Shown here: positions 5,096-26,300 of the stretch, in pieces
Layout: every line of letters begins with the position of its first letter
How positions within the stretch are numbered: position 1 is the stretch's first letter
NCBI RefSeq assembly: GCF_001447785.1
Contig: NW_015165236.1
Coordinates: 1,837,294-1,901,293, forward strand
Direction of reading: 5' to 3'
Origin: Gekko japonicus
Taxonomy: Eukaryota
DNA length: 64,000 nucleotides
Program-made: the position numbers and the translations under genes
Notes under the pieces: model-generated
Databases searched by the model: none
What the model saw: the letters and a program-made list of their open reading frames with translations, nothing else
What the model was told of the DNA's origin: nothing

Positions 5096-11327
<6,232 letters not shown>

Positions 11328-12314
11328 GTAAGTGAACCCCCTCCCCTCTCTCTGGGTCTCTCTTGCATGAGGGCACCGCTTGCATGAGGGGGCGTGGGGG
11401 GGGGGTGCACGGCTGCTGGGCCACTGAGGAAGAAGGCTGGGTCTCTCCTCCTCCTCCTCGGACGTGTCCGTGTCCCCAGCCTCCGTGAGCTGGACTCTGG
11501 CTCACCCTGACAGTGGAGTTGCAGGAACCTGTGTGTGAATTTCACATCTGTGCCTTCTGCTAACGGCCCGGTGGGGAGTTCCGGTGAGGTCCAGAGCCAG
11601 GCTCCCTCTCAGCCACGGAGTCTTCTCGTGAGCAAAAGTCCTACTTGGTGAGCTCCGGGCATTAAAGCTGTGAGCCGTGAGCCATTTGGCCGCTGCATCA
11701 GTTAGCCTGCTCTGGAGCCACATCCTTCCGGGGCTAAGACAAAAACGTGTCAGCCGGAGGCTAAAGAGCAGTGAGCGAGCTCACACTGACTCAGCTGGGA
11801 GGGAACATTGGCCCAGAGCTCCTCGCCGGATGGTTTGGCTCTGTGAAAGGTGCCTTGATGGGGGGGTGGGATTTGTTTCCCGCTGAAGGACCCTGCAGGG
11901 GACTTCTCACCTGGCAAGCTCAGGCACCGCGGGACTCTCTCCAAGACCAGGGCGGGGGAGTGGGGGGAGGGACGGGGACTGCCTGCTTCTGGCTGTGGCT
12001 GCCCCTCTTTCCCACGGCCCTGCGCTGGGCGAGGGGGCTGTGTCAGTGCTCTTCTCCGTGAGGAATGGCGGAGGGGGCTGCGGGGTCTTTCCTTGGGGGG
12101 CCCCAGGGCAAGGGGAAGAAGGTGTGGCTGAGCTGGAGGGGGGGGAGGTGGAGGCAACCCCCCGGCCATCTGGAAGAGAGAGGCTGGGTGCTGGGAGGAG
12201 GGGGCTGCAGGCTTAGGGGTCTTGCCTGTGCAGAGACCTCTTTAGAGGAAGTCCCCCATTCAGGGGAGAGTTTGTGCGCATCCAACCAGTTGGGGGTGTG
12301 TGTGTATGACCCTG

Positions 12315-12604
12315 CTGTTTGGTGTCGCGGTTAAGTGCGCAGACTCTAATCTGGGGGAACCGGGTTAGATTCCCCACTCCTCCACGTGCACCTGGCTGGA
12401 TGACCTTGGGCAAGCCGTAGTTCTGGCAAGAGCTGTCCTTGAAAAAAGAGCCGTTTCTCCCAGAGCTCTCTCAGCCCCACCCACCTCACAGGGTGTCTGT
12501 TGTGGGGAGGGGAAGGGAAAGGAGTTTGTAAGCTGCTCTGAGACACCTTCGGGTAGTGAAGTGCCATGGGGCATAAATCCAACCTCTCCTTCTTCTTCTT
12601 CTTC
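12315..12604 (+). mobile_element. tRNA-derived SINE, family A (Squam3-like squamate SINE)
   Basis: A-box (tggtgtcgcgg) and B-box (ggttagattcc) head with a (ttc)n tail; 9 copies in the window. Confidence 0.85.
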
Positions 12605-13972
12605 CGCTGCCCCACGCTTGCATTTGGACCACTCAGCCATTCAGAGCCCCATAGCATTAGCCACTGTGGGAAACGGGGGTGAGGAGGAGCCCACTTTTCA
12701 GGGTGTGGGGCTCCCCTTCTGTGTCGCTGGCGTCTGGGGGAGGTGGGTGGGGGGCTCCCCTTCTGCCTGGCCGGAGGCTGTTGAGACATGAGAATGGGGG
12801 GGGGCTGGCAGGGGAGGGGCGAGGGAGAGAGACCGGCCTGAGGCTCCGACCCTTTGCCCGTATCCCCCACTGCGTGGACTCCAAGGAAGGGACCCCAGGG
12901 GTTGTGTGGCTGGGGACTCCCCCCCCCCCAGCTCGGCAGGGAGGGAGCTTTTGCAGGATTGGCTTGTGGCGAGTGGGAGGCTCCTGGTGGGGCCGAGGAG
13001 GAGTCTGGGGGGCTTGGAGGCGCCCCCTCCCCCCTGTGGGCTGCATAAGGCGGCTGCATGGCTTGACGCCGGGTGGGTGAGGGGAGTGTTGCATGGTACC
13101 GAGGCGGCGGCTGAACAAGTGGCCGTGATGATGGGGGCAAAAGGAGAGGCTGCAGCTCAGTCTCGGAGGAGTGCCCGATTCAAATCCTCCCCTCCCTCGT
13201 GGAGAGACCTGTTCTTTCCCCCAAGGTCCTGGTGAGCCATGGCTACTGGGTAGCCTCTGCCTCCGGCAGCCAGGGCAGAGGCCCCGCCTCCCTTGCGGGG
13301 TGGTGGTGGTGATTGGGAATCCTTCCTTCCTGCGAGGCCTGAAGAGCCGTGCTGTCTGGCAGGGGACCCAAGACGGAGTGAGAGGCCGTAGATGGTCGGG
13401 AATGCAAGGATGGCCCGGGGCCACCTAGTCTGGCATCTCCCCCCCCAGCAGTGGCTTCTGGGAAGCCCACAAAGAAAGGGGGCACAGAGGCAGCAGCCCC
13501 CCCCCCGCCACGGGCTTGCCCCTTGGCACGAGGTCTTCAGAGGTAGACTGCCTCTAAACACAGAGGCTCTTGGGGGCAAACAGCCACTGCAAGGTCCTTT
13601 CCCTCTTTCGGGCCGTCTGAACCTGTCTGATTCCAGAAACCGAACTGCACTGTGTGAAATCTTGACTCTCCTGTCCGTCAGTTCTATGGGGTGGCTCCCC
13701 TCCCACACACACACGAGCTGTCAGACGGGGGACCGCCCCTCGCCGCACACTTCCTCTTTCCACGCATCCTTGTCAGGACCACCACCGGGGTCACGGTGGA
13801 AGTTCTGTTGCGTTTCGGGTCCAGGCGCTAAGGCGGCCAAAGGGTTTGCGGAGGCACCCGTCATGGTGTATCAGCCCCAGCTGGGGCTGGCTCTTGGAGC
13901 ACGGATGCCGGCTCGTGCTCCCCCGCGCAGCCCGAGGAGAGGGTCTGCTTGAGCAGTGTTAAGGGGCTCTTG

Positions 13973-14248
13973 GGTTTGGCGTGGTGGTGAAGTGCAGGCG
14001 CACTCTAATCTTGGAGAACGGGGCTTGATTCCCCACTCCTCCACGTGCAGCTGCTGGATGACCTTGGGCAAGGCATAGTTCTGATAAGAGCTGTCCTTGA
14101 AAAAAGAGCCGATTCTGTCAGAGCTCTCTCAGCCCCTCCTACCTCACAGGGGGTGTCTGTCTGTTGTGGGGAGGGGAAGGAGTTTGTCAGCCGCTCTGAG
14201 ACTCTGAGTGAAGGGCCAGGGGTATAAATCCAATCTCCTCTTCTTCTT
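13973..14248 (+). mobile_element. SINE family A
   Basis: Same consensus as the 12315 copy. Confidence 0.85.
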
Positions 14249-14702
14249 GGATCTGCCTCTGGTCCTGGCTCTCTGAGGAGCAGGAGGCCGTTGGCCGCTC
14301 CTTTTCCCTCTGCCCACCAAGTCCTGGCAGCCTCTGGCAGAGCAGCAGAGGTGGTCCAAGAGCAGGGCCCCAGGCGACAGGCCCGGGGGTGGATGGGTGT
14401 GGCAGCTGAGCCCTTGTGAGCCAGGCAGCCGAAGAAGAGGGATTCGTCCGCTGGGCCGGCCAGTCCTGCCCTCTGCGGAGCTCCCTGGGACAAGCCTGCC
14501 TCCAGGAGGACTGTTGGCAGCACACTCCGTTCTGGGAGGCAGCCGGGCCAGGCCAGCATTTTCCTTCCCTACTGAGATCTTCTCCTGCACTGAGGAAGAG
14601 ACGCTGCAGTCGGGGGGTTGGGGGGGGGGGTGTACCTGAGAGCATCTCCGGAGGACTTCTTTTCTGTGCTGTGCCAAGCGTGCTCGCTGGGGAGACTCGG
14701 GG

Positions 14703-15979
14703 ATGGATGTGGATGGACAGTCCTGGGCAGAAGGTGCCCGTGAGCCGCTGAAGGTGGAAGCCGGGACCTCTCCCCTCTCGCTGGGCCTCTGCCAGAGGTG
14801 GTGGTGGGGAGCGAGCTGCGGGGCAGAGGCTGAGGGGAGACCTCTCTCTCTCTCTCTTGCAGGGCTGCACAACACCCAGCTGTGAAGCCCCCCCAAACAG
14901 GAGGCGGTCCGGATGGCCAGGAGAGGCTCTCCTCGTCCTTGTCCCCGTCCCGGTCTTCCAGCAGCTCAGCAAAGTCCTCTTTGTTTCCATCGGAGCCCCC
15001 CAGCTGGCTTTCCTCCCTGGGAGCCGGCCACATCGTCGCAGCAGCAGCTTCTCCGGGGGCCGCAGAGTCCCTGAACCCGAGCGCACAGCGGGGGGTGCCC
15101 AGGGTGGTGGCAGCAGCAAGGCCGGGCCTCCCGGCCGCTCAGGCCACCCGTCTGACTCCCGGTCCCAGGGCAGCCCCTCTGGGGGAGAAGGCCAGGCGGG
15201 CCGGCGGCACACCCTGCTTGGCTAGCCGAGAGCACCGGCCTGCCCCCGAAGGCAAGCGGCTGAGGATGGGGAGAGCGGGGGTCCCGCCGAGAGGCCCCGA
15301 GGGGCTGCACCCGCCAGATGGAGGCACAGGGTTTGCCAACAAGGCGTCCGGCCTGGCACGGGAAGAGGACGTCCGCCACAAGAGGTGAGGAGGTGCCTGT
15401 CGGGCGAAGCCTCCGGCCTGGCCAGGGGGGCTGTCTGGCCAAACCCCTATTCTCCCCTCCCTGGCCGGCGCTCCCCCCCCCCTCACCCTCTTCCCTCCCC
15501 TCCCCTGCAGGAGCGTCTTCATCACCCGGCGGGAGTTCCTGACGGTGGAGCGAGGGCTGGAGCAGGTGCAGGCGGAGCTGAAGTGCCTGCGCTGGCAGGT
15601 GGGGCAGATGGGCGAGGAGGGTGCCCAACCGCCGGCAGAGGAGGAGGAGCCCCGGCGCTACAACGGCTACACCTGGACGGAGCTGGAGGCCCTGGTGCAC
15701 TGCGAGAGGGACCCCGACCGAGCTGCCCGCACCATCCTCGCCGCCCTCTTCAGCGATGTCTGCCTGCGGCTGCCACCTCTCACCGAACCGGCCTGTGAGG
15801 CCCAGGCCCTCCGCAGGCCTATCGACCCGGAGCTGTACGGGGTCTACTGCGGCATCCTGCAGAGCATCTTCCCCGGCCTGCGGGGGGAGAAAGAGGGGGC
15901 CGGGGCCGCCCAGACTTCCCAAGAACTGCTCTGCTGCGGGGCAGACCCCGGCCAACAGCAGGAGGGCTCTTTGGCATGA
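14703..15979 (+). CDS. Uncharacterised 3-exon gene, ~361 aa, coiled-coil plus BEN-like domain protein (putative nuclear regulator)
   Basis: Exons 14703-14797 (ggggATGG Kozak, donor AG|gtggtg), 14863-15384 (ctctcttgcag / AG|gtgagg) and 15511-15979 (cccctgcag, TGA). All junctions are phase 2 and the joined 1086 nt is open. The C-terminal part has AARTILAALFS..RRPIDPELY..ILQSIFP, typical of BEN helices. Confidence 0.7.
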
Positions 15980-16126
15980 CTGGAGGAGCGAGGCGAGGCC
16001 CAGCGGGGGGGGGGGGGGAGAGATGCTCCCTGCTCTTCCGGAGCCGGCCCGGAAGAGGCGCTTCGGCTGCCGTGATTCCAACCCCCGCGCCTGGCTCCGA
16101 AGCCCTCGCTTTTTACGAAAGGAAAC

Positions 16127-16132
16127 AATAAA
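16127..16132 (+). terminator. Polyadenylation signal of the BEN-like gene
   Basis: AATAAA ~150 nt after the stop codon, followed by GT/T-rich ggtggtgcttttgtgcgt. Confidence 0.6.
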
Positions 16133-17163
16133 GGTGGTGCTTTTGTGCGTACCCTGGCTTCCTGTGCCCCTCCCTCTGGGAAAAGGTGCGCTTTTTGGCA
16201 TTTGCGTCGAGGAGGAGTTCTTGGGTTGTTCTGTCCCCCCCCCCCCCGGGGAGGGGGGACTGGGTTTTTCCAACGACCNNNNNNNNNNNNNNNNNNNNNN
16301 NNNNNNNNNNNNNNNNNNNNNNNNNNNNNNNNNNNNNNNNNNNNNNNNNNNNNNNNNNNNNNNNNNNNNNNNNNNNNNNNNNNNNNNNNNNNNNNTGGGA
16401 GTTCTTGGGTTGTTCTGTCCCCCCCCCCCCCGGGAGTCGTGGCACTGGCTTCTCCGAACGTCTGGCCTTGGAAGTGCCTTGACTGTGTGAATGAACTCCC
16501 CGCGGAGAGGGGCCCTGCCTGGCTGCTGCTTGGAGGGAGGCGGTCCCCCGGGGGGGGGGCACTCTCTCACACCCCAGAGGTCTGCTTGGCCACCAGGGGA
16601 GCATCCCGAATGCCCCCCCCCCCCCAGATGCTTTGTAGTCCCCAGCTGGGGTCCTGCCACCGCATGACTGAACCCAGCNNNNNNNNNNNNNNNNNNNNNN
16701 NNNNNNNNNNNNNNNNNNNNNNNNNNNNNNNNNNNNNNNNNNNNNNNNNNNNNNNNNNNNNNNNNNNNNNNNNNNNNNNNNNNNNNNNNNNNNAGGGAGG
16801 GAGGGGGGCTTCTGGGAGGCGGGGGGGGCAGCCGCCTTGCCTCCAGGCAGGGGAAGAGAGAGAGAGATGCTGTGCCAGGTGCGGTGAGGAGAACCGTCTC
16901 CACCAGCCCCCCAGGCGCTGGCTCCAGAGGAGGAGGCCGGGCGGTGGGCAGCAGGGCGGTCTCTTGCGGCGCTGTGACTGCTGCTTCCAGACCAGCCTAG
17001 GAGCCTGGGAAGACGGTCGGGGGGCCTGGAACCTGGGGGCCTTGCGTGCCCCCCCCCACTAGCTGAAGCAGACAGAGGAGCGGGGGAGGCGCCAGATGTG
17101 TCTTTGTAGCCCTCCCCCCCCAGGACTCCCAGAAGCAGCCAGTGTCCCTTTCAGAGAATAGAT

Positions 17164-17321: not shown

Positions 17322-20300
17322 TGGGGGGGGGGGGGGGGGGGGGAGCCGTGAGGTCCAGAGGCCGTTTGGGGCAGGGAGGCCGGGGGGGAGGGGCTGAGGC
17401 ACAGGTTCGGGGGGGGGCAGCTTCCACAGTGGCTAAAGACGGGGCTGGGCCCTTGATACACCCCCCCCAGCAGCCCGAGGCGCGGATGGCAGAGGAGCCG
17501 AGGGAAACCCCTGCCACAGCAGCTGCCGCCCCCGCCACCCCTCCCAGCACCACCGAGGGTCCCTGCGCCCAGCCCCCTCCCAGCAGCCACACAGCCCACC
17601 TGGGTCGGCAGCCACCTGCCTCTTCTTGGAGTAGGCGACCACCTGGTTGTCGTCCATCAGCCGCACGTCCTGATCTTCAATGTGATTGCTGGGGGGGGGG
17701 GAGGGAAGAGAGCGTCAGGGCGTGTGGGGTCGGGATCCCCCGCCTCCCTTTCTCCGGCCCCCCTGCTGAGCACTGTGCGCCCTCCTCTGAGAGTGCTGAG
17801 GGGGAAGCCACAAGAGGGCAGGGAGAGGGGGGAGCACCGTGTCCCCAATGGCCTGGGCCCCCTCCAGGCAGCAGGTGGGAGGGACAGAGGGATGGAGGGG
17901 GTGGCTGAGCTGCTTTGGGACCCCTCCTCCCTGCCCTGCCCGAACCCTGTGGCAGGTGGCCGCCTTCCGTTGCCCCCTGCACATTTGGAGGATTCCAAAG
18001 GAGCACCTTGAACAGGGAGGACGTTGGGCTTAGGGAAGCCGTGAAGACCGATGGCTGAGGGGACCCCCCCCTCTCCTGCTGGCACCAAGCACACTAACGG
18101 CTTGACTGGCACCAAGGTGCTTGGGGCTAAGGGCCGCCTCCTCCTCCACCACCTCCACCACACACCAGTCAAATTCGATCTCTCCTTCTCCGTGGCGTTT
18201 CCCTCCTCTGCTCTCCCAGGCGGGAGTCCTGCGAGGGAAGCTCTGCCTCTTGCTAGGCCGGTATGCTGGCCGGAAGGGAGCCAGGCTTGGCCGAACGCCT
18301 GCCCCCCCCCCCGACCGGAGGTCTGGCTCGATGCGGGTGGAGAGAGGAAGAGAGGGGGGTGCTGCTGAGCCAGGCAAGAGGCCTCCGGGGCTGACGGTTC
18401 GAGGGAAGGGAATTCTTTGCTGCGGTCTGGCCAGGGCAGCCTGGCGTTCCGAGAGGAGGAGACCACCGGGCGTGCTCCGCCACGGCACCCCGGCTCCTGG
18501 AGGACAAGGAGAGCACGAGACGGGCTGCAGGCACACCTGAGGACGGCGTTCTTCTCTCGGCCGCAGATCTTCTCATCCTCCGTGAAGAGAATGGTGTGAT
18601 GCGGGACGACCGGCTCACAGGTTGGGAGGATGCCGTGGATGAGGTGGCTCACCCTATCCAGGATCCCGTTGTAGACAAGCAAGTCGTCCACCAGGAGCTG
18701 CACACAGAGGACAGAGGAGACGCCGGGGTGAGTGGCGGGAGGCCGGGGAGTCCCGGGAAGCGCCCCGAGGGGAGGCTGCCTGCGCCTTCGCGGCCAGACC
18801 GGCTGAGACACCCCCCCCGGCCCTCCCCCAAGTGACAAGCTACAAAACAGGTGCGCCCCGGGATGCGCGAGACCCAGAGGGACTACGGCGGTCACGCAAC
18901 CCGCCCGGCGAGGCCGAGCGCTTACTCCAAACTCTTTCACGCCTCTGTGCGGAGTCTTGGCATAATTCCACAGCTTGATCATGGAGACCGTCGTAGGAAG
19001 ATCGAAGATGACGTACACCCGATTCACCTGCCGCCAAAAAAGGAGAGTTAACAACAAACAGAATCACATCTGTGCCTCCGAAATTAACCCCCAAGTAATG
19101 TTTAATGGACGGGAAAGCATTACTCGGGCAGGAAGGAACAGAGCTGTACGGGGTGGGGGGTGGGGCGTTGTTTGCCCCGAGACCAACTCTCTGACGTGGG
19201 GCCTCTTTCTGCGGCCCCCGCCCCCAGCCTATGGCGGGCTCCTGCTCCGGACAGGAAAGCAGGGGGGGCAGGATTCTCTGAGCTCCCCCCCAAAAAACTA
19301 CAGAGAGATGTCTGTTGCCATTAGAAGACAGGGTGTGTGTCACCAGTCCCGCCCCAGAGGCGTCTGCAGGCACAAGGCGACCCTCAGCACGGATAGGCCA
19401 GAGGCGGAGGCAGGAAACACCAGAGAAGCGTACCAAGCCAGGAAGAATTGGCGCCAGCCACATGTGCCTCCCGTCGTTTGCGTCGTTCACCCCGTCAATG
19501 AGTTTGTCTGGGGTCCGGATGTCTTCACAGACGCCGTCCAGAATGTTCACGCTGTCTGGGAAAGCGGCAATGTCTGGAGCAGAGTGTCAAGCGTAACGTC
19601 TGAACGACGGCACCGAGCCCCAAAGCAGGCTGGTCTTCGAGGGTGGCGGAGGGTGGGGCACTCACACCCAGCCCCCCCCCCCCGACAGAAAGGCTTCCCT
19701 CCAGAGAGAGAGACCTTTTCCTCCGTCCGTGCTGGAGGAGGTCTTTGCAGGGGGACTAAGCCGGAGAGAGTCTTGGGATTCCAGGCAGAGCATTTCTAAG
19801 AGAGGCGGAGGGCTCCGGAGGCACCCCGCTCAGCACGACGACCACACAGAGGCCCAAGACTCACGATGTTCGTAAGTCAGAGCTCACTTCCTCAGATGCC
19901 ACAGGAAGGAAATAATTTTTGAGATTTTTGAAAGAAAAATCACGGGGGGGGGGGGGGTAGCGAGAGGCCTGGTGTCAACACAACAGGATTCCCTTCCTTT
20001 GCAACTCTAAAGAAGTGAACTCAGACTCACTGCTGGAATGAATGTTAGTCTTTAAGGTGCCTCCAGATCTCTGCTTTACTTTATCATGAAAGATGAACGT
20101 AATTTTTTTCAGTTTATGAAGGCACCCTAAAATCATATTAGTGTTTTTTGCAGCCGCACCACACTGCTGGCTTATGTCCAGCATGCAATCAACTGCAACC
20201 CTGAGATTCTTTTTGGGGGTGCTACTGCCAGTGCAGGCATTCTTCCTTCTGCTTCCCCCACCCCATAACTCCTTCTTTTTTCCTATACTTTTAAAATTTT

Positions 20301-23300
20301 TCTATCTTTCCTTTTTAAAAATCTAAGTGTTTTGTCACTGTCTAGTTCCATTTTGTTAGTCTCTGACTGACCTGACAACCTCTTAAAGTCACTCTGAATT
20401 GTATTTCTTCCTCTGGGCTGTTGACTGTCCCAGTTTGGTGTCCTCTGCACATTTGATAAGGACGCCCTCCAGCCATTCGTGGGGCCCACTGAGAGAAAGT
20501 GGCAGCAGCCCACGTGAGTCCTCCCCACAGACAGAGTGTCACTGACACACACTCTTTGGGGCCTGGGTCTCAGCCGGCCGGCTGTCAATCCTCCGGACAA
20601 CACTCCACTGTAGCCCACAGAAGATGGCCCCTGTGTGACAGAGTGTTGGACTAGATGGGCCACTGGCCTGATCCAACACTGGCTTCTCTTATGTTCTTAT
20701 GTTAAGAAGAAGGGGAAGAGGAGGAAGAGGAGTCTCAGAGCGGCTTACCATCTCCTTTCCCTTCCCCTCCCCACATAACAGGCACCCCCTGTGAGGCAGG
20801 TGGGGCTGAGAGAGCTCTTTTTCCAAGGACAGCTCTTGTCAGAACTAGGGCTTGCCCAAGGCCATCCAGCCAGGTGCAAGTGGAGGAGGAGGAGTGGGGA
20901 ATCAGACCCGGTTCTCCCAGATGAGAGTCCTCTGCGCACTCAACCACGACACCAGACTGCTCCATACTATATCCTGTGAGCCACGAGGCCTGACTTTGGC
21001 CAGTCCCTTCTGACTTCTACTAGCCACCCCGTTGTTTCCTGGGTGCTCCCGGACTGACTGCGGGTTTGTCTCTTCTGGTTTGCTCCCTGAGTGGTCTGTC
21101 ATTTCCTGGACCCTTTCCCTGTTCTGAAGACTGCACTTTTTTGCAACCAGCTGGTCTCCCCAGAGAGTCGTCCCCCCCCACGCAGCCCCTCCAGCCCAGC
21201 AGGCTTGGCTCTCTCTGAAAGCGGCTGGGGGCTCCCTGGGCCGCGGGCTCTCACTCCGCTCTCTTCCCCTCAGCATTCGCCTTGCTCTTCTGAGGCGGCA
21301 CGGGGGAGGATCCTCCTCCTCCTCCTCGTTGCCAGTTTGAAGCTCCCTGAGCAGCAGGCATCTTGTGGCCTTCCTCTCCCTCAGCACAGCTCCCTTTCTA
21401 CTGTCCTCGGCAGCGCCCCCCCCCCCCCCCGGGGGACACCCCCCCCCACTCCCCTCCTCGGCGTGTCTNNNNNNNNNNNNNNNNNNNNNNNNNNNNNNNN
21501 NNNNNNNNNNNNNNNNNNNNNCCCCCCCCCCCCAGCTCTTCATGGAGCCTCAACGGCTGTTTCAGGAGCAGCCCCGCTTTCCTTTTTCACCCCTCTGGGA
21601 TTCCTTCCTCTCACCCCACAGGATCCTTCCTGGCCTTGCTCTCTATGGAAACCGGCTTTCCTGACATTCAAGCTGCTCGTTGGCCTATGCCGACCTTTAA
21701 CCTTATACATCACAGTGGTAGGAACCAACAACTAGAAAGTGACACTGTGAGTAAAAGATGTCCAATTATCTAATGACAACAGTCTTTCAAAAATCTTTTT
21801 AAAAGATTCAAGTATTTTTATGAAAAATGTAAGTGTAATTTTATATTATAAATTAGCAAAGTAACACAACACCTATAAAAGAGAATGTCTCATTCATAAC
21901 ATTTGTAACATAGGGGTAAAATCCCAAACAAGCAGTCTGTTTCAATCACAAAAAATGTCAACAAGTTTCAAAGTCCGTGATATATATATCAAAGAAGTCC
22001 AGGGTGGTTTCCGGATATAATCAGTACACACATTTCGAGGTTCCTTTTTCAAGAAGATATATAATCCTATCCATTGGTTAGTTTCATAACATAACATTTA
22101 TCTTTGGGCATGTTTATTCAAAAGCCCTTCCATTACATTCCCCAAAAGAAAAGACCCGTGGGAGTAAATGGGCACCAAGCTTACAGTTTCTTAAACGGAA
22201 TGCCTCTCCAACATGAATCCAGCTTAAAAAAAAGGGGGGGGGGATTGATTATATCTGGAAACCACCCTGGACTTCTTTGACATAGGCTGCAGGACTTCTT
22301 TGATCTATATCACGGACTTTTGAACTTGTTGACATCTTTTGTGACTGAAATGGGCTATTTTAGACTATTGCTTGTTTGGGAAACCCCCCCCCCCCCCGGT
22401 GTTACAGGCAGCAGGCGGGCTCCCCTGGCAGGGACGTCGCCACCAATGTTCCCTCTAAGCTGAGTTAGTGTGAGCTAGCTCACAGTTTTTTAGCCTCCGG
22501 CTCACAAATTTCTGTCTTAGCTCAGGAAGGAGGGCTCCAGAGTAAACTAATTTATGCAGGAGCCAAACTGCTCGCTCACAACTTTAATGCCAGTTGCTCA
22601 CAAAGGAGAATTTTTGCTCAGAAAACAACGCAGCTTAGAGGGAATATTGGTCACCACCCCAGAAGGGCCCAGGGCGTTGGCAGGCAGCAGGCTCCGGCCC
22701 ACCTTTCACCCCTTGCCACAGCCTTCGGAGTTCCGTTACGCTGGAAAGGATACTGTTCTCACTGAGAGAAATCTTCTCTCCCCGTTCGTTATACAGCTCC
22801 AGTCCGTTCAGACCAATATAATACGGATCGCCCCAGCTCGTTAGAAGCTGGAACTGGAAGATGACTGGAGAAGGCCATTAAGGAAAGGAGAGTCATGTCG
22901 CGAGGGAGCCTCTAGGCGTGCTTGCTTGCTTCGCTAGAATGACAGGCAAAAATATATATCACTGTGTACAATAAATATACCTAAGGGATCGCCTCTTCCC
23001 ATATATGGCTCGGAGAGCCTTACGCTCTGAGAGTCAAGGATGTCCGCCTAGCCTCGGCCAGGGCCAGGGCTTTTTCCGCCCTGGTCCCCTCCCCACCTGG
23101 TGGAGCATGCTTGCTCCCTGTTGAGATCAGGGCCCCCCTGCGGGACCTTATGCAATTCCGCAGGGCTTGCAAGACGGAGCTCTTCCGCCAGGCCTTTGGC
23201 TGAGGCAGAGGGCGTCCACATAGCCCCCCCCCTGCGGTCTCCCACCCACTCATGACCGGCCATACTTAGTTACATTGATGGGCCGGATTCTCCCTATGGC

Positions 23301-26300
23301 AAGCATGACTATTGTCTTTATATGTTTTAATGCGTTTTAAATTTTATTGCATTTATTGAAATGCTGTGACCCGCCCTCAGCCCGTTTATGGGATGGGGAG
23401 GATATAAATGTGAAGAATAAATAAATAAATATATATGTTTATGGTAAAACAATTTTATGCTTTATTCTTTTTATATTTTTCCAATACTGTTGTCTAAATA
23501 TTGGTATCAAATATTACCAAATATATATTTCACCCAAACAATACATAGAGAAAAATACGTTTCATCCAAACAATACATCGAGTGCAGGTTTACAATCAGA
23601 GAGCACCTTGTCAGTAATAGTGTTACCGTCAAGGTGCTCTCTGATTGCAAACCAGCACTTGATGTATTGTTCGGCTGAAACATATTTTTCTCTATGTATT
23701 GTTTGGGTGAAATATATTTTTGGTAATATTTGAAACCAATATTTAGACAACAGTATTGAATAATTTAAAAAGAATAAAGCATAAAATTGTTTTGCCATAA
23801 ACACACATTTATTGTACACAGTGATATATATTTTTGTATGTCTTCCTAACACTGAGACCCTCAGTTTTTGTATTTGCTTCTCCAGAATGGGCAAAAAGTA
23901 GTGACCACAGGGGCGGGACACGCTGAGTCCCCTCCTACTAAGGGGCCTGCAAAGCACTCGGGAGGGGGGGGGACTGATCCACAGGGCAGGCAAGACCAAC
24001 GGGAGTCCCCAGTCTCAAAAGAGGGCTGGACCTCGGGGCGGAACCAGGAAGGCCCTTGGGAGAGTCGCTTTGCTCAACCCTGAGGACTGCTCTGGAAGGC
24101 CGAACGGAAAGCTGGGGACTTGGGGAGCCACGGCTGTGCTGGAGAAAAGGATACAGCCACAAGGCATTAAGGGAGCTTCATAGTCCATGCTCGCTTGTTC
24201 CGTCTTCTTCATTTCCAGTCTGCCGAGAAAAGGAGAAAATGCAGCCACAGTGCCCTGAAGCAGCCGCCCGTGGGCCTCTGTGTCCACCGAGAGAGACGGA
24301 CTTACCTCTCGCAGGCTGGAGCAGCGGGGAGGCCCTGCAGGTAGTCCACAAACAGGATCTCCTGAGCAAAGTCAAAGTGGCAGTTGCCGGGCCCTTTGCG
24401 GATGAGGAAGCCCTCTGGGGGGGAGATGCAAACGCCGTCCAGCGACACGTGGACCACCTTGGCCTGAGGAAGACGGCTCCCGGTGAGGAAACACGAGCAG
24501 CCTGGCTTGACTTTGCCCCTCTGGAGGACCCACCACAGGCCCCCGGCCGGATTCCTCCCTCCCCGCCAGCTTACCCCTCGGTACGTGTCCTCGGGAGACT
24601 TGTTATAGTTCCAGATGCGGAGCCCCGTGATGCTTTCCGCTTTGCAGAACTGGATGAGGAGCCGGTGGTCTTCGCCGAGGCTGAAGGGAATAAGCCACAT
24701 GTGGTCGTCTTCCATCGTGATGTTGATCCCGTCAATCAGCCTGGAAGAAAACCGCAAGCCTCTCTGAGGCGGCCTGACGGGGCTTTCGGCACCTCCGACT
24801 GAAGCGTGCCCTTTCAGACGGGGGTACGTGGAAGTTCCACGGGAAAACCCTCAAACAGGGTGAAACGCCTCTGGCCCTGAGAGGCCGGATCCCGCCATCC
24901 TGTCCCGAGTGGCACGGCTCATGTTCCCAGCACCCCCCCCCCCCCCCCACCCACAAGGGGCGGGCGTGTCGGACTCTGCTCAGCTGCCTCCGCTCCCCCC
25001 AGGTGCCTTCGCCTTGCCTTCCCTGCGTGGGCCTTGGTGCTGCAGCGTCTCACCTGCGCTCCAATCAGCAGGGGCTGGCAGGGAGAAGGAGGGGGCGGTG
25101 GCCAGAGGACGGCACATTTATTTCTGTATTTATACTTATACCCCGCCCACCCGGTAAGCAGGCTCTGGGCGGCTTACAAAGGACGGCAAAATATGCCGAT
25201 TTCACATAACCCATAAAACATTAAAACAGCATAAAACATACTTAATATATCAACCCTAAACATTAAAATGCTCGCCGTATTAAACAGTATTAAAGTGAAT
25301 GGCGTGCGTTTTCATTCCGGTCCTCTTCTGATCTTCAGGCCAGTCCTGTGGGCCAGATGTTGAATGGCACCCTTGGTAGTGGGCCAGCCCAGTATTCCCG
25401 AAGTACACATGGGATCGTGGGTGGCCACAGTGGCAGCGGCTCCTCCCTAGCTGAAAGCCGGGCGGAAGAGCTCCGTCTCGCAGGCCCTGCGGAACTGTGA
25501 AGGGTCCCGCGGGGCCCTGATCTCCTCCAGGAGCTCGTTCCGTTCCCAGGGGAAAGACCAGGCGTACAGAGGAAGGCCGTGGGGCTCCCCTGGTGACGGG
25601 CTCCTGCTCAGCCCAGAGGACTGCTGTGACCAGCAGGCGGGGAGGTACAGAGCGAGGCCGCCTTCTGGGCCACCGAGGCCCCGTGTGCTTTGCAAGAGAG
25701 GCCTGGGGCAGCCTGCTCGAGAGTCAGCCACTTCTCCCACTCTGGCCAGATTCAGCAAAAAAACGCTGCAGAGTGGATCATGGCAAGAGGGTCGGGAGTG
25801 ACCCCTTTATTTACGTGTGGCATTTCTAGCCTGCCCTCTCCTCCCACCCAAGACAAGGTAAACAAGGTGCCTTTCCAGAACGTCCGGGGCTGGAGCCAGC
25901 AGCCACGCCTGCTTTCTCAGACCCCCCCCCCCCGCCCCTCTCCAACGCGGACTCACTTGTCCAAGGTCCTGGAATCCTCCGAGTATTCTGCCAGGTCATT
26001 CAGATCTCGAGGGGAGGCCGAGAGCTGGTCCGGCGTCAAGGGCAGAGCCTGCCCTCCCTCCCCGGCCACCTCGAGCCCCGTCAGTCCGAGGTAATGCGAG
26101 TCTCCCCAGGAAGCTGTGAAGTTCAGCAGAAGGCCTAGAGCAGAGGCAGACAGTGGAGAGCATCAGCCGGCAGTGGACAGCGCTGCGGTTATTGTGCCCT
26201 CGCTCCGGGGGGGGGGCTTGGGCAGTCATCCCTGTGCAGGTGTGGACTGACTGGATAACAAAGCAGAACGGCCGTACCCAAGCGGCAGCAGGACAGAGCC

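Follow-up and report, generated by a model that had tools for sequence, protein, structure and literature searches.

A GSG1L-linked coding module with a coiled coil and a BEN-like domain in the gecko Gekko japonicus

Introduction

The published BEN fold comprises two beta strands and five helices, the last of which (alpha-5) reads the major groove of DNA (PMC11472053). In the BEN-solo factors (Insensitive and Elba1/2 of Drosophila, BEND5 and BEND6 of vertebrates), a disordered half and a coiled coil precede a single C-terminal BEN domain, and DNA is bound by the basic alpha-5 helix. Here we describe a reading frame of Gekko japonicus that, taken as a stand-alone protein, has this same layout. 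It consists of three exons at positions 14703-16132 of a 64,000-nucleotide stretch of contig NW_015165236.1 (the whole stretch is hereafter the window, and all positions are counted along it), and it is located between the convergent ends of GSG1L and KATNIP. The likeness to BEN-solo factors holds for the stand-alone model and fails for a fusion with GSG1L; moreover, no significant sequence relation to these factors was found, and the gecko protein lacks alpha-5 and has a net acidic core. A first-pass annotation of the window, made from the letters alone, had interpreted the three exons as an unannotated separate gene.

The second system to which this locus has to be compared is GSG1L. Mammalian work treats this protein as a negative modulator of AMPA receptors and takes its cytoplasmic tail to be short. 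Gallus gallus GSG1L isoform X3 (P0083, 546 aa) and Chrysemys picta isoform X2 (P0073, 551 aa) contain an orthologous linker, coiled coil and BEN-like module, entered through the same acceptor, R|A(A/S)QHPA, at the same position at the GSG1L 3' end, and their coiled coil and core are 51-60% identical to those of the gecko. Both models attach the module to the GSG1L membrane core, a fusion that in the gecko is predicted from phase and orthologues. The Gallus and Chrysemys tail is neutral to basic and aligned to the end of Pfam BEN; that of the gecko, which has no sequence relation to it, is acidic. Trachemys scripta GSG1L isoform X1 (P0072, 375 aa) has the same architecture as the 361-aa gecko model, with an alternative ATG-bearing first exon leading to the AAQHPA acceptor, although the first exons of the two species are unrelated in sequence. 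Other turtle models, Mauremys X6 and Pelodiscus X2 (290 aa), are stand-alone and start at an internal Met that is absent from the gecko. Finally, in platypus GSG1L isoform X1 (XP_028913356.1, P0099, 666 aa) the junction reads KYFRER|AAEHSP and leads into a linker that is long and Ser/Pro-rich; the same coiled coil (RRFVTLKQFQAMEQE...) comes next, but the BEN-like part is degenerate, with YNGYT replaced, and the model does not extend beyond the first helix. The module is thus already in public annotation, as a GSG1L isoform or as an uncharacterized LOC. We propose, with a probability of about 0.6, that exons 2 and 3 of the window are the gecko orthologue of this 3' coding module of the GSG1L locus of non-therian amniotes, and that the 361-aa model is a stand-alone isoform.

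Results

Orthology of the Gecko Exons with the GSG1L Long-Tail Exons

Homology searches were carried out using single exons as queries (exon 2 or exon 3). The family profile retrieved about 60 RefSeq/UniRef models named germ cell-specific gene 1-like protein isoform X..., of 546-551 aa, from birds (chicken, ducks, falcons, eagles, crows, and parrots) and turtles (Chrysemys, Chelonia, Dermochelys, and Gopherus). These fusion models carry GSG-1/claudin domains (PF07803/PF00822) at the N-terminus, and their C-terminus covers 100% of the 290-aa turtle protein. The junction between both parts reads ...AIKYFRER|A(A/S)QHPALNVT.... The alignment places residue 1 of gecko exon 2 (AAQHPAVKPPQ) directly behind this junction in Chrysemys, Gallus, Aquila, Phrynocephalus, and platypus, and directly behind the alternative first exon in Trachemys. 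In the window, the corresponding GSG1L exon ends in a phase-2 donor (GAG AG|GT, 9943|9944), and the acceptor at 14863 requires phase 2. Since the phase of the GSG1L donor is that of the exon-1 donor, the former is also in frame with this acceptor. Accordingly, the view of an unannotated separate gene had to be abandoned: exons 2-3 are orthologous to GSG1L long-tail exons annotated in dozens of birds, turtles, and the platypus.

The pattern of conservation along the fusion models was then compared between Chrysemys and birds. Identity is 98% in the GSG1L core, 67-71% (gap-free) over the 51 residues that extend from the junction to the first internal Met, 42-49% in the linker past this Met, and 84-89% in the coiled coil and BEN-like part. 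The conservation of the 51-residue segment preceding the Met indicates that it behaves as translated sequence, and it therefore needs an upstream coding exon. These results bear on an alternative explanation, which was that of the first-pass annotation: an independent gene of BEN-solo type located downstream of GSG1L, the fusions being read-through or prediction artefacts aided by the matching phases. Several RefSeq models are indeed separate uncharacterized LOC entries (e.g., Sturnus, Haliaeetus, Phalacrocorax, and Struthio), and two lizard fusion models join the parts differently from each other. In the same direction point the squamate contigs, of only 1325-1375 nt and with short open reading frames (ORFs), and the RNA depth, whose onset is near 14700 and which exceeds that of intergenic DNA and of the canonical GSG1L last exon by a factor of 10 or more. 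However, the sequence between the acceptor and the internal Met, besides being conserved as protein without gaps in turtles and birds, is recognisable in gecko, agamid, and platypus; the fusion is given by both RefSeq and UniRef (Ensembl-type) entries in dozens of species; and the phase match is exact. We consider an independent gene unlikely. No relevant papers came up when the literature was searched for GSG1L in combination with BEN or with long isoforms, and none was found that mentions the module.

An Intact, Spliced Reading Frame

Direct reading of the window confirmed the gene model of the first pass, that is, the ATG, the two GT-AG introns, the phase-2 junctions, the 1086-nt frame (95 + 522 + 469 nt, or 361 codons plus stop), and the AATAAA (Table 1). 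The start ATG at 14703 lies in the context gggATGG. Exon 1 ends in CAG AG|GT (donor 14797|14798) and exon 2 in AAG AG|GTGA, where unspliced read-through immediately meets a TGA, as had been pointed out. When used alone as a blastp query, exon 2 matched P0005 over residues 2-170 (E 2e-10). The proposed protein layout, with a Ser/Pro/Ala-rich disordered half, a coiled coil, and a BEN-like C-terminal part, was upheld, and the motifs on which it had been based (LKVE, PEGKRLR, the heptad stretch, YNGYTWTELEALV, RAARTILAALFS, and RRPIDPELYGVYCGILQSIFP) were all found in the sequence. Two of them lost weight upon comparison: LKVE, taken for a SUMO-type site, is present but is not conserved among squamates and sits in a part that is frame-shifted in Gekko kuhli (FEVG there), and PEGKRLR, taken for a patch like a nuclear localization signal, is present but is not conserved in Phrynocephalus, turtles, or birds.

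A phmmer search with exon 3 (155 aa) against 1.84e9 representatives matched six clusters only (E 3e-27 to 4e-83), which contained Gekko kuhli, the agamid Phrynocephalus forsythii, a bird cluster (Sturnus vulgaris LOC106862111), and transcript-type contigs; turtles and many further birds were added by profile searches. In the 83-residue core, 25 positions are invariant across 25 sequences, and the gecko keeps all 25. Splicing was assessed on the Logan contig P0001 (1365 nt, 91% identical), which reads ...RHKR|SSFVTRREF across the exon 2/3 boundary and lacks the 126 nt in between; therefore, intron 2 is spliced in a close relative. The RNA sample differed from the window by six fixed coding differences, four synonymous and two conservative (V>I and E>D). 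No protein from therians, amphibians, or fishes was found among the 8000 candidates sharing most words, and the platypus was the sole mammalian match. This agrees with the loss in mammals that had been suggested: the domain is absent or decayed there, being truncated in the platypus and without any therian match.

The local G+C content is 67%, and long ORFs are frequent on both strands in the ORF list. ORF length by itself is not significant in such DNA; it is homology and RNA coverage that lift the reading frame above chance. A pseudogene in decay, or an ORF that G+C-rich DNA produced by chance, would be in keeping with this local abundance of spurious ORFs, with the loss of RYN and of six helix 2 residues in P0021 (from a gecko-like relative), and with the drifted gecko tail. 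But the frame is intact over three exons, the family-invariant core residues are all retained, the sequence is transcribed and conserved from birds to geckos, and its polymorphism is mostly synonymous, and so this explanation is very unlikely. The three-exon reading frame is a real, intact, spliced coding sequence.

A 645-codon antisense ORF (14966-16903, minus strand) was also observed, which spans two N gaps and overlaps exons 2-3. Having no homology support, it was taken for a G+C-rich artefact.

Transcription and Choice of Start in the Gecko

Depth of gecko RNA-seq (raw reads, run X20) was computed from 10300 onward, i.e., past the GSG1L donor. Bin means were 5-27 over 14700-16099, at most 0.4 in 14300-14699, and 0.6 after 16100, with 0.4-1.3 over the canonical GSG1L last exon. 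Exon 1 reached about one fifth of the depth of exon 2, as estimated from bins (5.1 in 14700-14899 versus 18.7 in the next bin). The three squamate contigs bearing the ORF, with 1325-1375 nt, can be compared with the 1315 nt that the window predicts for the spliced transcript and the 1380 nt predicted with intron 1 retained. Stand-alone transcripts of approximately 1.3-1.4 kb presumably belong to the main products in squamates. Two contigs, whose library type is uncertain, extend 9-15 nt past the exon-1 donor, and no conclusion was drawn from them.

Several observations weigh against the proposed gecko model. No gecko splice junctions were seen in the stretch from 10300, the joint table being filled by two SINE-like (short interspersed nuclear element) repeats. 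The 5' half of exon 1 (14703-14750) differs in frame from Gekko kuhli, and there is no CpG island at exon 1 (observed/expected 0.32-0.43). The ORF call of contig P0001 begins only at the Met equivalent to 15266, as would be expected if intron 1 were retained or the protein were shorter. Besides, splicing from GSG1L to exon 2 in the gecko is predicted from orthologues only, and automatic models are able to copy each other.

Part of these observations would be expected if the gecko made the GSG1L long isoform only, exon 1 and its ATG being a chance ORF in the intron upstream of exon 2. The low depth of exon 1, its want of a CpG island, the frame shift of its first ~15 codons between the two Gekko species, and its dissimilarity to the Trachemys alternative first exon are all compatible with this alternative. 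On the other hand, depth upstream of 14700 is near nil, with no coverage link to GSG1L exons within 10300-14700; an ATG-initiated frame leading to the same exon-1 donor is kept in both Gekko species; and the short squamate contigs fit a local start. A gecko locus making the long isoform only is therefore regarded as improbable.

With regard to the start of exon 1, the window reads MDVDGQSWAEGAREPLKVE and Gekko kuhli reads (W)MLVDGPGQKVPVSPFEVG, which corresponds to the +1 frame of the window up to KVPVS. The SINE-like sequences, two fragments of an abundant and strongly transcribed interspersed repeat, lie at 12300-12700 and 13900-14300, where RNA depth was in the hundreds and contig word depth ~2e5; many reads join both fragments as though other copies of the repeat had them side by side.

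Identity of the C-Terminal Domain

The C-terminal part had been assigned to the BEN family in the first pass. When searched against Pfam, gecko exon 3 gave no match even at E 10. BEN (PF10523) was the top family in 13 of the 25 members (best E 1.3e-4, 13-21.5 bits), but all these matches of orthologues fell under the gathering score of 23.2 bits; the alignments extended over positions 1-73 of 76 in turtles and 1-54 of 76 in squamates. The protein-language-model neighbours (Atlas) of both the gecko exon and the turtle protein were BEN clusters (0.89 and 0.92, respectively), and one UniRef entry names the Mauremys orthologue a BEN domain-containing protein.

AlphaFold2 (AF2) models, with a predicted local distance difference test (pLDDT) of 65 and 72, showed a hairpin at RYNGYT, three confident helices, and a low-confidence loop at 86-105. 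The predicted beta hairpin and helices agree with the published BEN fold. BEND3 domains (PDB 7v9f/7v9g BEN4, 7v9h BEN3, and 5jno BD1) were the best structural matches of both AF2 models. By VIA-align, BEND3 BEN4 ranked first, with Z 5.8 and a root mean square deviation (rmsd) of 3.4 Å over 66 residues, and with Z 5.2, and the next unrelated row had Z 3.7. Identity to the BEND3 domains is 13-21%, the match ends before the C-terminal helix of BEND3, and the scores lie in a range that is also compatible with a common helical arrangement. Foldseek against PDB gave no significant match for either model (E above 1), with BEND3 BEN3 and BEN4 as the top entries in probability and template modelling score (TM-score) in both searches. 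A wide VIA search yielded a best Z of 5.5 to unrelated helical proteins, with BEND3 BD1 at Z 4.8 among ties, and did not single out BEN. The family profile found no BEN chain among PDB sequences, only designed coiled coils; with the fusion proteins in the alignment, this search also finds GSG1L itself.

The missing Pfam match of the gecko copy, the sub-threshold scores of its orthologues, the Foldseek result, and the wide structural search all count against a BEN assignment. Together with the profile search against PDB and a core that is net acidic in every species, they would fit a small helical domain specific to this family, whose likeness to BEN is superficial. Such a domain would still have to account for BEN being the top Pfam family in about half of the members, for the gap between the BEND3 scores of both models and the next unrelated row, and for the language-model neighbours and the Mauremys entry; we consider it rather unlikely. 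Of the first-pass assignment, the BEN-like character found weak backing in Pfam, structure, and language model, and the formal Pfam score stayed below the threshold: the HMMER comparison named BEN as top family for orthologues below threshold and nothing for the gecko exon, and the AlphaFold and Foldseek comparison ranked BEND3 BEN3/BEN4 highest without significance. Three different lines, each of them weak, converge on BEN and on nothing else, and the C-terminal domain is likely to be BEN-like.

The Coiled Coil and the Gecko-Type Tail

The region after the FPG residues differs between lineages. Turtles and birds continue with ISSQTLRE.TQH.QK..., a stretch of charge 0 to +3 that aligns with the final part of the BEN profile. 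In geckos its place is taken by an acidic tail, 33-58 residues long, with a charge of -3 to -5 and predicted to be disordered; in this gecko the tail finishes with QELLC(C)GA.PGQQ.EGSLA, a motif conserved across gecko sequences. In G. japonicus, the residues after FPG have a pLDDT of 37-54 and a net charge of -3, and they are unrelated to the turtle/bird tail. Every species examined has a BEN-like core of net acidic charge (-1 to -5). No major-groove helix of alpha-5 type was found in the gecko, where a disordered acidic tail follows FPG, and in this respect the first pass, which had pointed out the missing basic recognition helix, was right. Since geckos have no basic alpha-5 helix and an acidic tail instead, classical DNA reading by BEN is doubtful. 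The gecko module would rather have a protein-binding or oligomerising role than a sequence-specific DNA-binding one, and the coiled coil probably oligomerises the protein.

GSG1L and KATNIP Surroundings

The module shares its strand with GSG1L, whose canonical stop lies 3.4 kb upstream. The position of the module between convergent gene ends, as originally described, was confirmed: GSG1L occupies 5129-11335 on the plus strand, and KATNIP runs on the minus strand from 17660. The last recognised coding piece of KATNIP is near 18920-19040, and its 3' end lies within about 1-3 kb of the poly(A) site of the module. All junctions at the 3' part of GSG1L and in the module (9943|9944, 10107-10160, 11257, 14797|14798, 14863, 15384|15385, and 15511) are of phase 2, with AG|GT donors. 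Consequently, any donor can join any acceptor in frame, which probably accounts for the varied fusion models in lizard annotations. The coordinates of all features are listed in Table 1.

Two further observations were made in these surroundings. A GTAAGT consensus donor at 11324-11335 coincides in part with the final codons and stop codon of the canonical GSG1L tail (AAT A|GTAAGTGA), and Gekko kuhli KAL8175233.1 appears to be spliced from this GTAAGT donor to an acceptor ~40 nt upstream of exon 1, skipping exon 2. Beyond the module, near-identical short units (GGAGTTCTTGGGTTGTTCTGTCCCCCCCC...) at 16180-16900 flank the masked gaps 16279-16395 and 16679-16793, which suggests a tandem or dispersed repeat just beyond the poly(A) site.

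Table 1. Features of the GSG1L 3' module and its surroundings, in window coordinates.
Feature	Positions	Strand	Basis
GSG1L exons	5129-5431, 7415-7468, 8426-8581, 9361-9474	+	tblastn with P0002/P0005
GSG1L coding exon ending IKYFHE(R); donor AG|GT 9943|9944, phase 2	9762..9943	+	tblastn with P0002/P0005; sequence read
54-nt phase-2/phase-2 cassette exon, canonical short GSG1L tail	10107..10160	+	sequence; matches P0002 segment after KYFHER
Canonical GSG1L terminal coding exon, RLEEERDE...GGYSSNSK; TGA 11333-11335	11257..11335	+	tblastn with P0002 215-239; sequence
Exon 1, predicted alternative first exon, coding from an ATG of its own; 31 codons + 2 nt	14703..14797	+	sequence; P0002 comparison
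Intron 1, predicted, 65 nt; GT..AG, (CT)n tract, TTGCAG end	14798..14862	+	sequence read
Exon 2, Ser/Pro/Ala-rich linker, probably disordered; first residues AAQHPAV	14863..15384	+	blastp with exon 2 alone; RNA depth 9-19
Intron 2, 126 nt; GT..AG, pyrimidine-rich, CTGCAG end	15385..15510	+	spliced out in relative's transcript contig P0001
Exon 3, conserved core of the family (coiled coil + BEN-like domain + tail); TGA 15977-15979	15511..15979	+	phmmer; profile searches
Coiled-coil helix, exon 3 residues 6-35	15527..15616	+	AF2 helix, pLDDT 87-96; profile matches designed coiled coils
BEN-like core, exon 3 residues 49-122; beta hairpin at RYNGYT, then three helices	15656..15877	+	AF2; VIA-align; Pfam; Atlas
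Acidic gecko-type tail in place of alpha-5	15878..15976	+	alignment; charge table; pLDDT below 50
AATAAA poly(A) signal, then GT-rich stretch	16127..16132	+	sequence; RNA depth drops from 4.6 to 0.6 beyond 16100
KATNIP exons, two DUF4457 repeat regions	17660..26162	-	DUF4457 E 1e-15 to 7e-38

Discussion

The interpretation that we favour is that exons 2-3 of the window are the gecko version of a GSG1L-locus module in which a coiled coil of ~30 residues would be preceded by a disordered Ser/Pro-rich linker and followed by a divergent BEN-like domain. According to public models, this module would be spliced in frame to the GSG1L exon ending in KYFRER in birds, turtles, and platypus, giving rise to a fusion product of ~550 aa with a four-pass GSG1L core and a cytoplasmic coiled-coil/BEN-like tail; in some turtle models, an alternative first exon or an internal Met would instead lead to a soluble protein. 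In the gecko, the acceptor at 14863 could be reached in frame either from the GSG1L donor or from the local exon 1, and the second route would make the 361-aa model a stand-alone isoform. Its BEN-like fold, without alpha-5 and net acidic, would act as a protein-binding module.

A broader scenario can be put forward more tentatively, at somewhat less than even odds. The conserved product of non-therian amniotes would be a true GSG1L fusion with a membrane-tethered BEN domain, internal promoters, at gecko exon 1 and at the Trachemys alternative exon, would free the soluble module, and therians would have lost the module, with the platypus midway. The degenerate and shortened BEN-like part of the platypus protein points to decay of the domain in the mammalian line, and the platypus models (P0099/P0097) are a possible intermediate in the loss of the module.

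The module is best filed as a divergent BEN-type member tied to the GSG1L locus. It illustrates that what seems a "missing gene" from the human standpoint can belong to a known gene as an alternative 3' module, and squamate annotations are currently inconsistent in this regard, since the module is fused in some and split in others. If the fusion is true, a membrane-tethered BEN-like domain on an auxiliary subunit of AMPA receptors would be an architecture that was not found described for BEN proteins in the searched literature. And if birds, reptiles, and monotremes make a long-tail GSG1L or a soluble protein, the chicken would be an accessible model for an unexplored function of this locus, as well as for a BEN-type fold acting outside the nucleus or without its DNA-reading helix.

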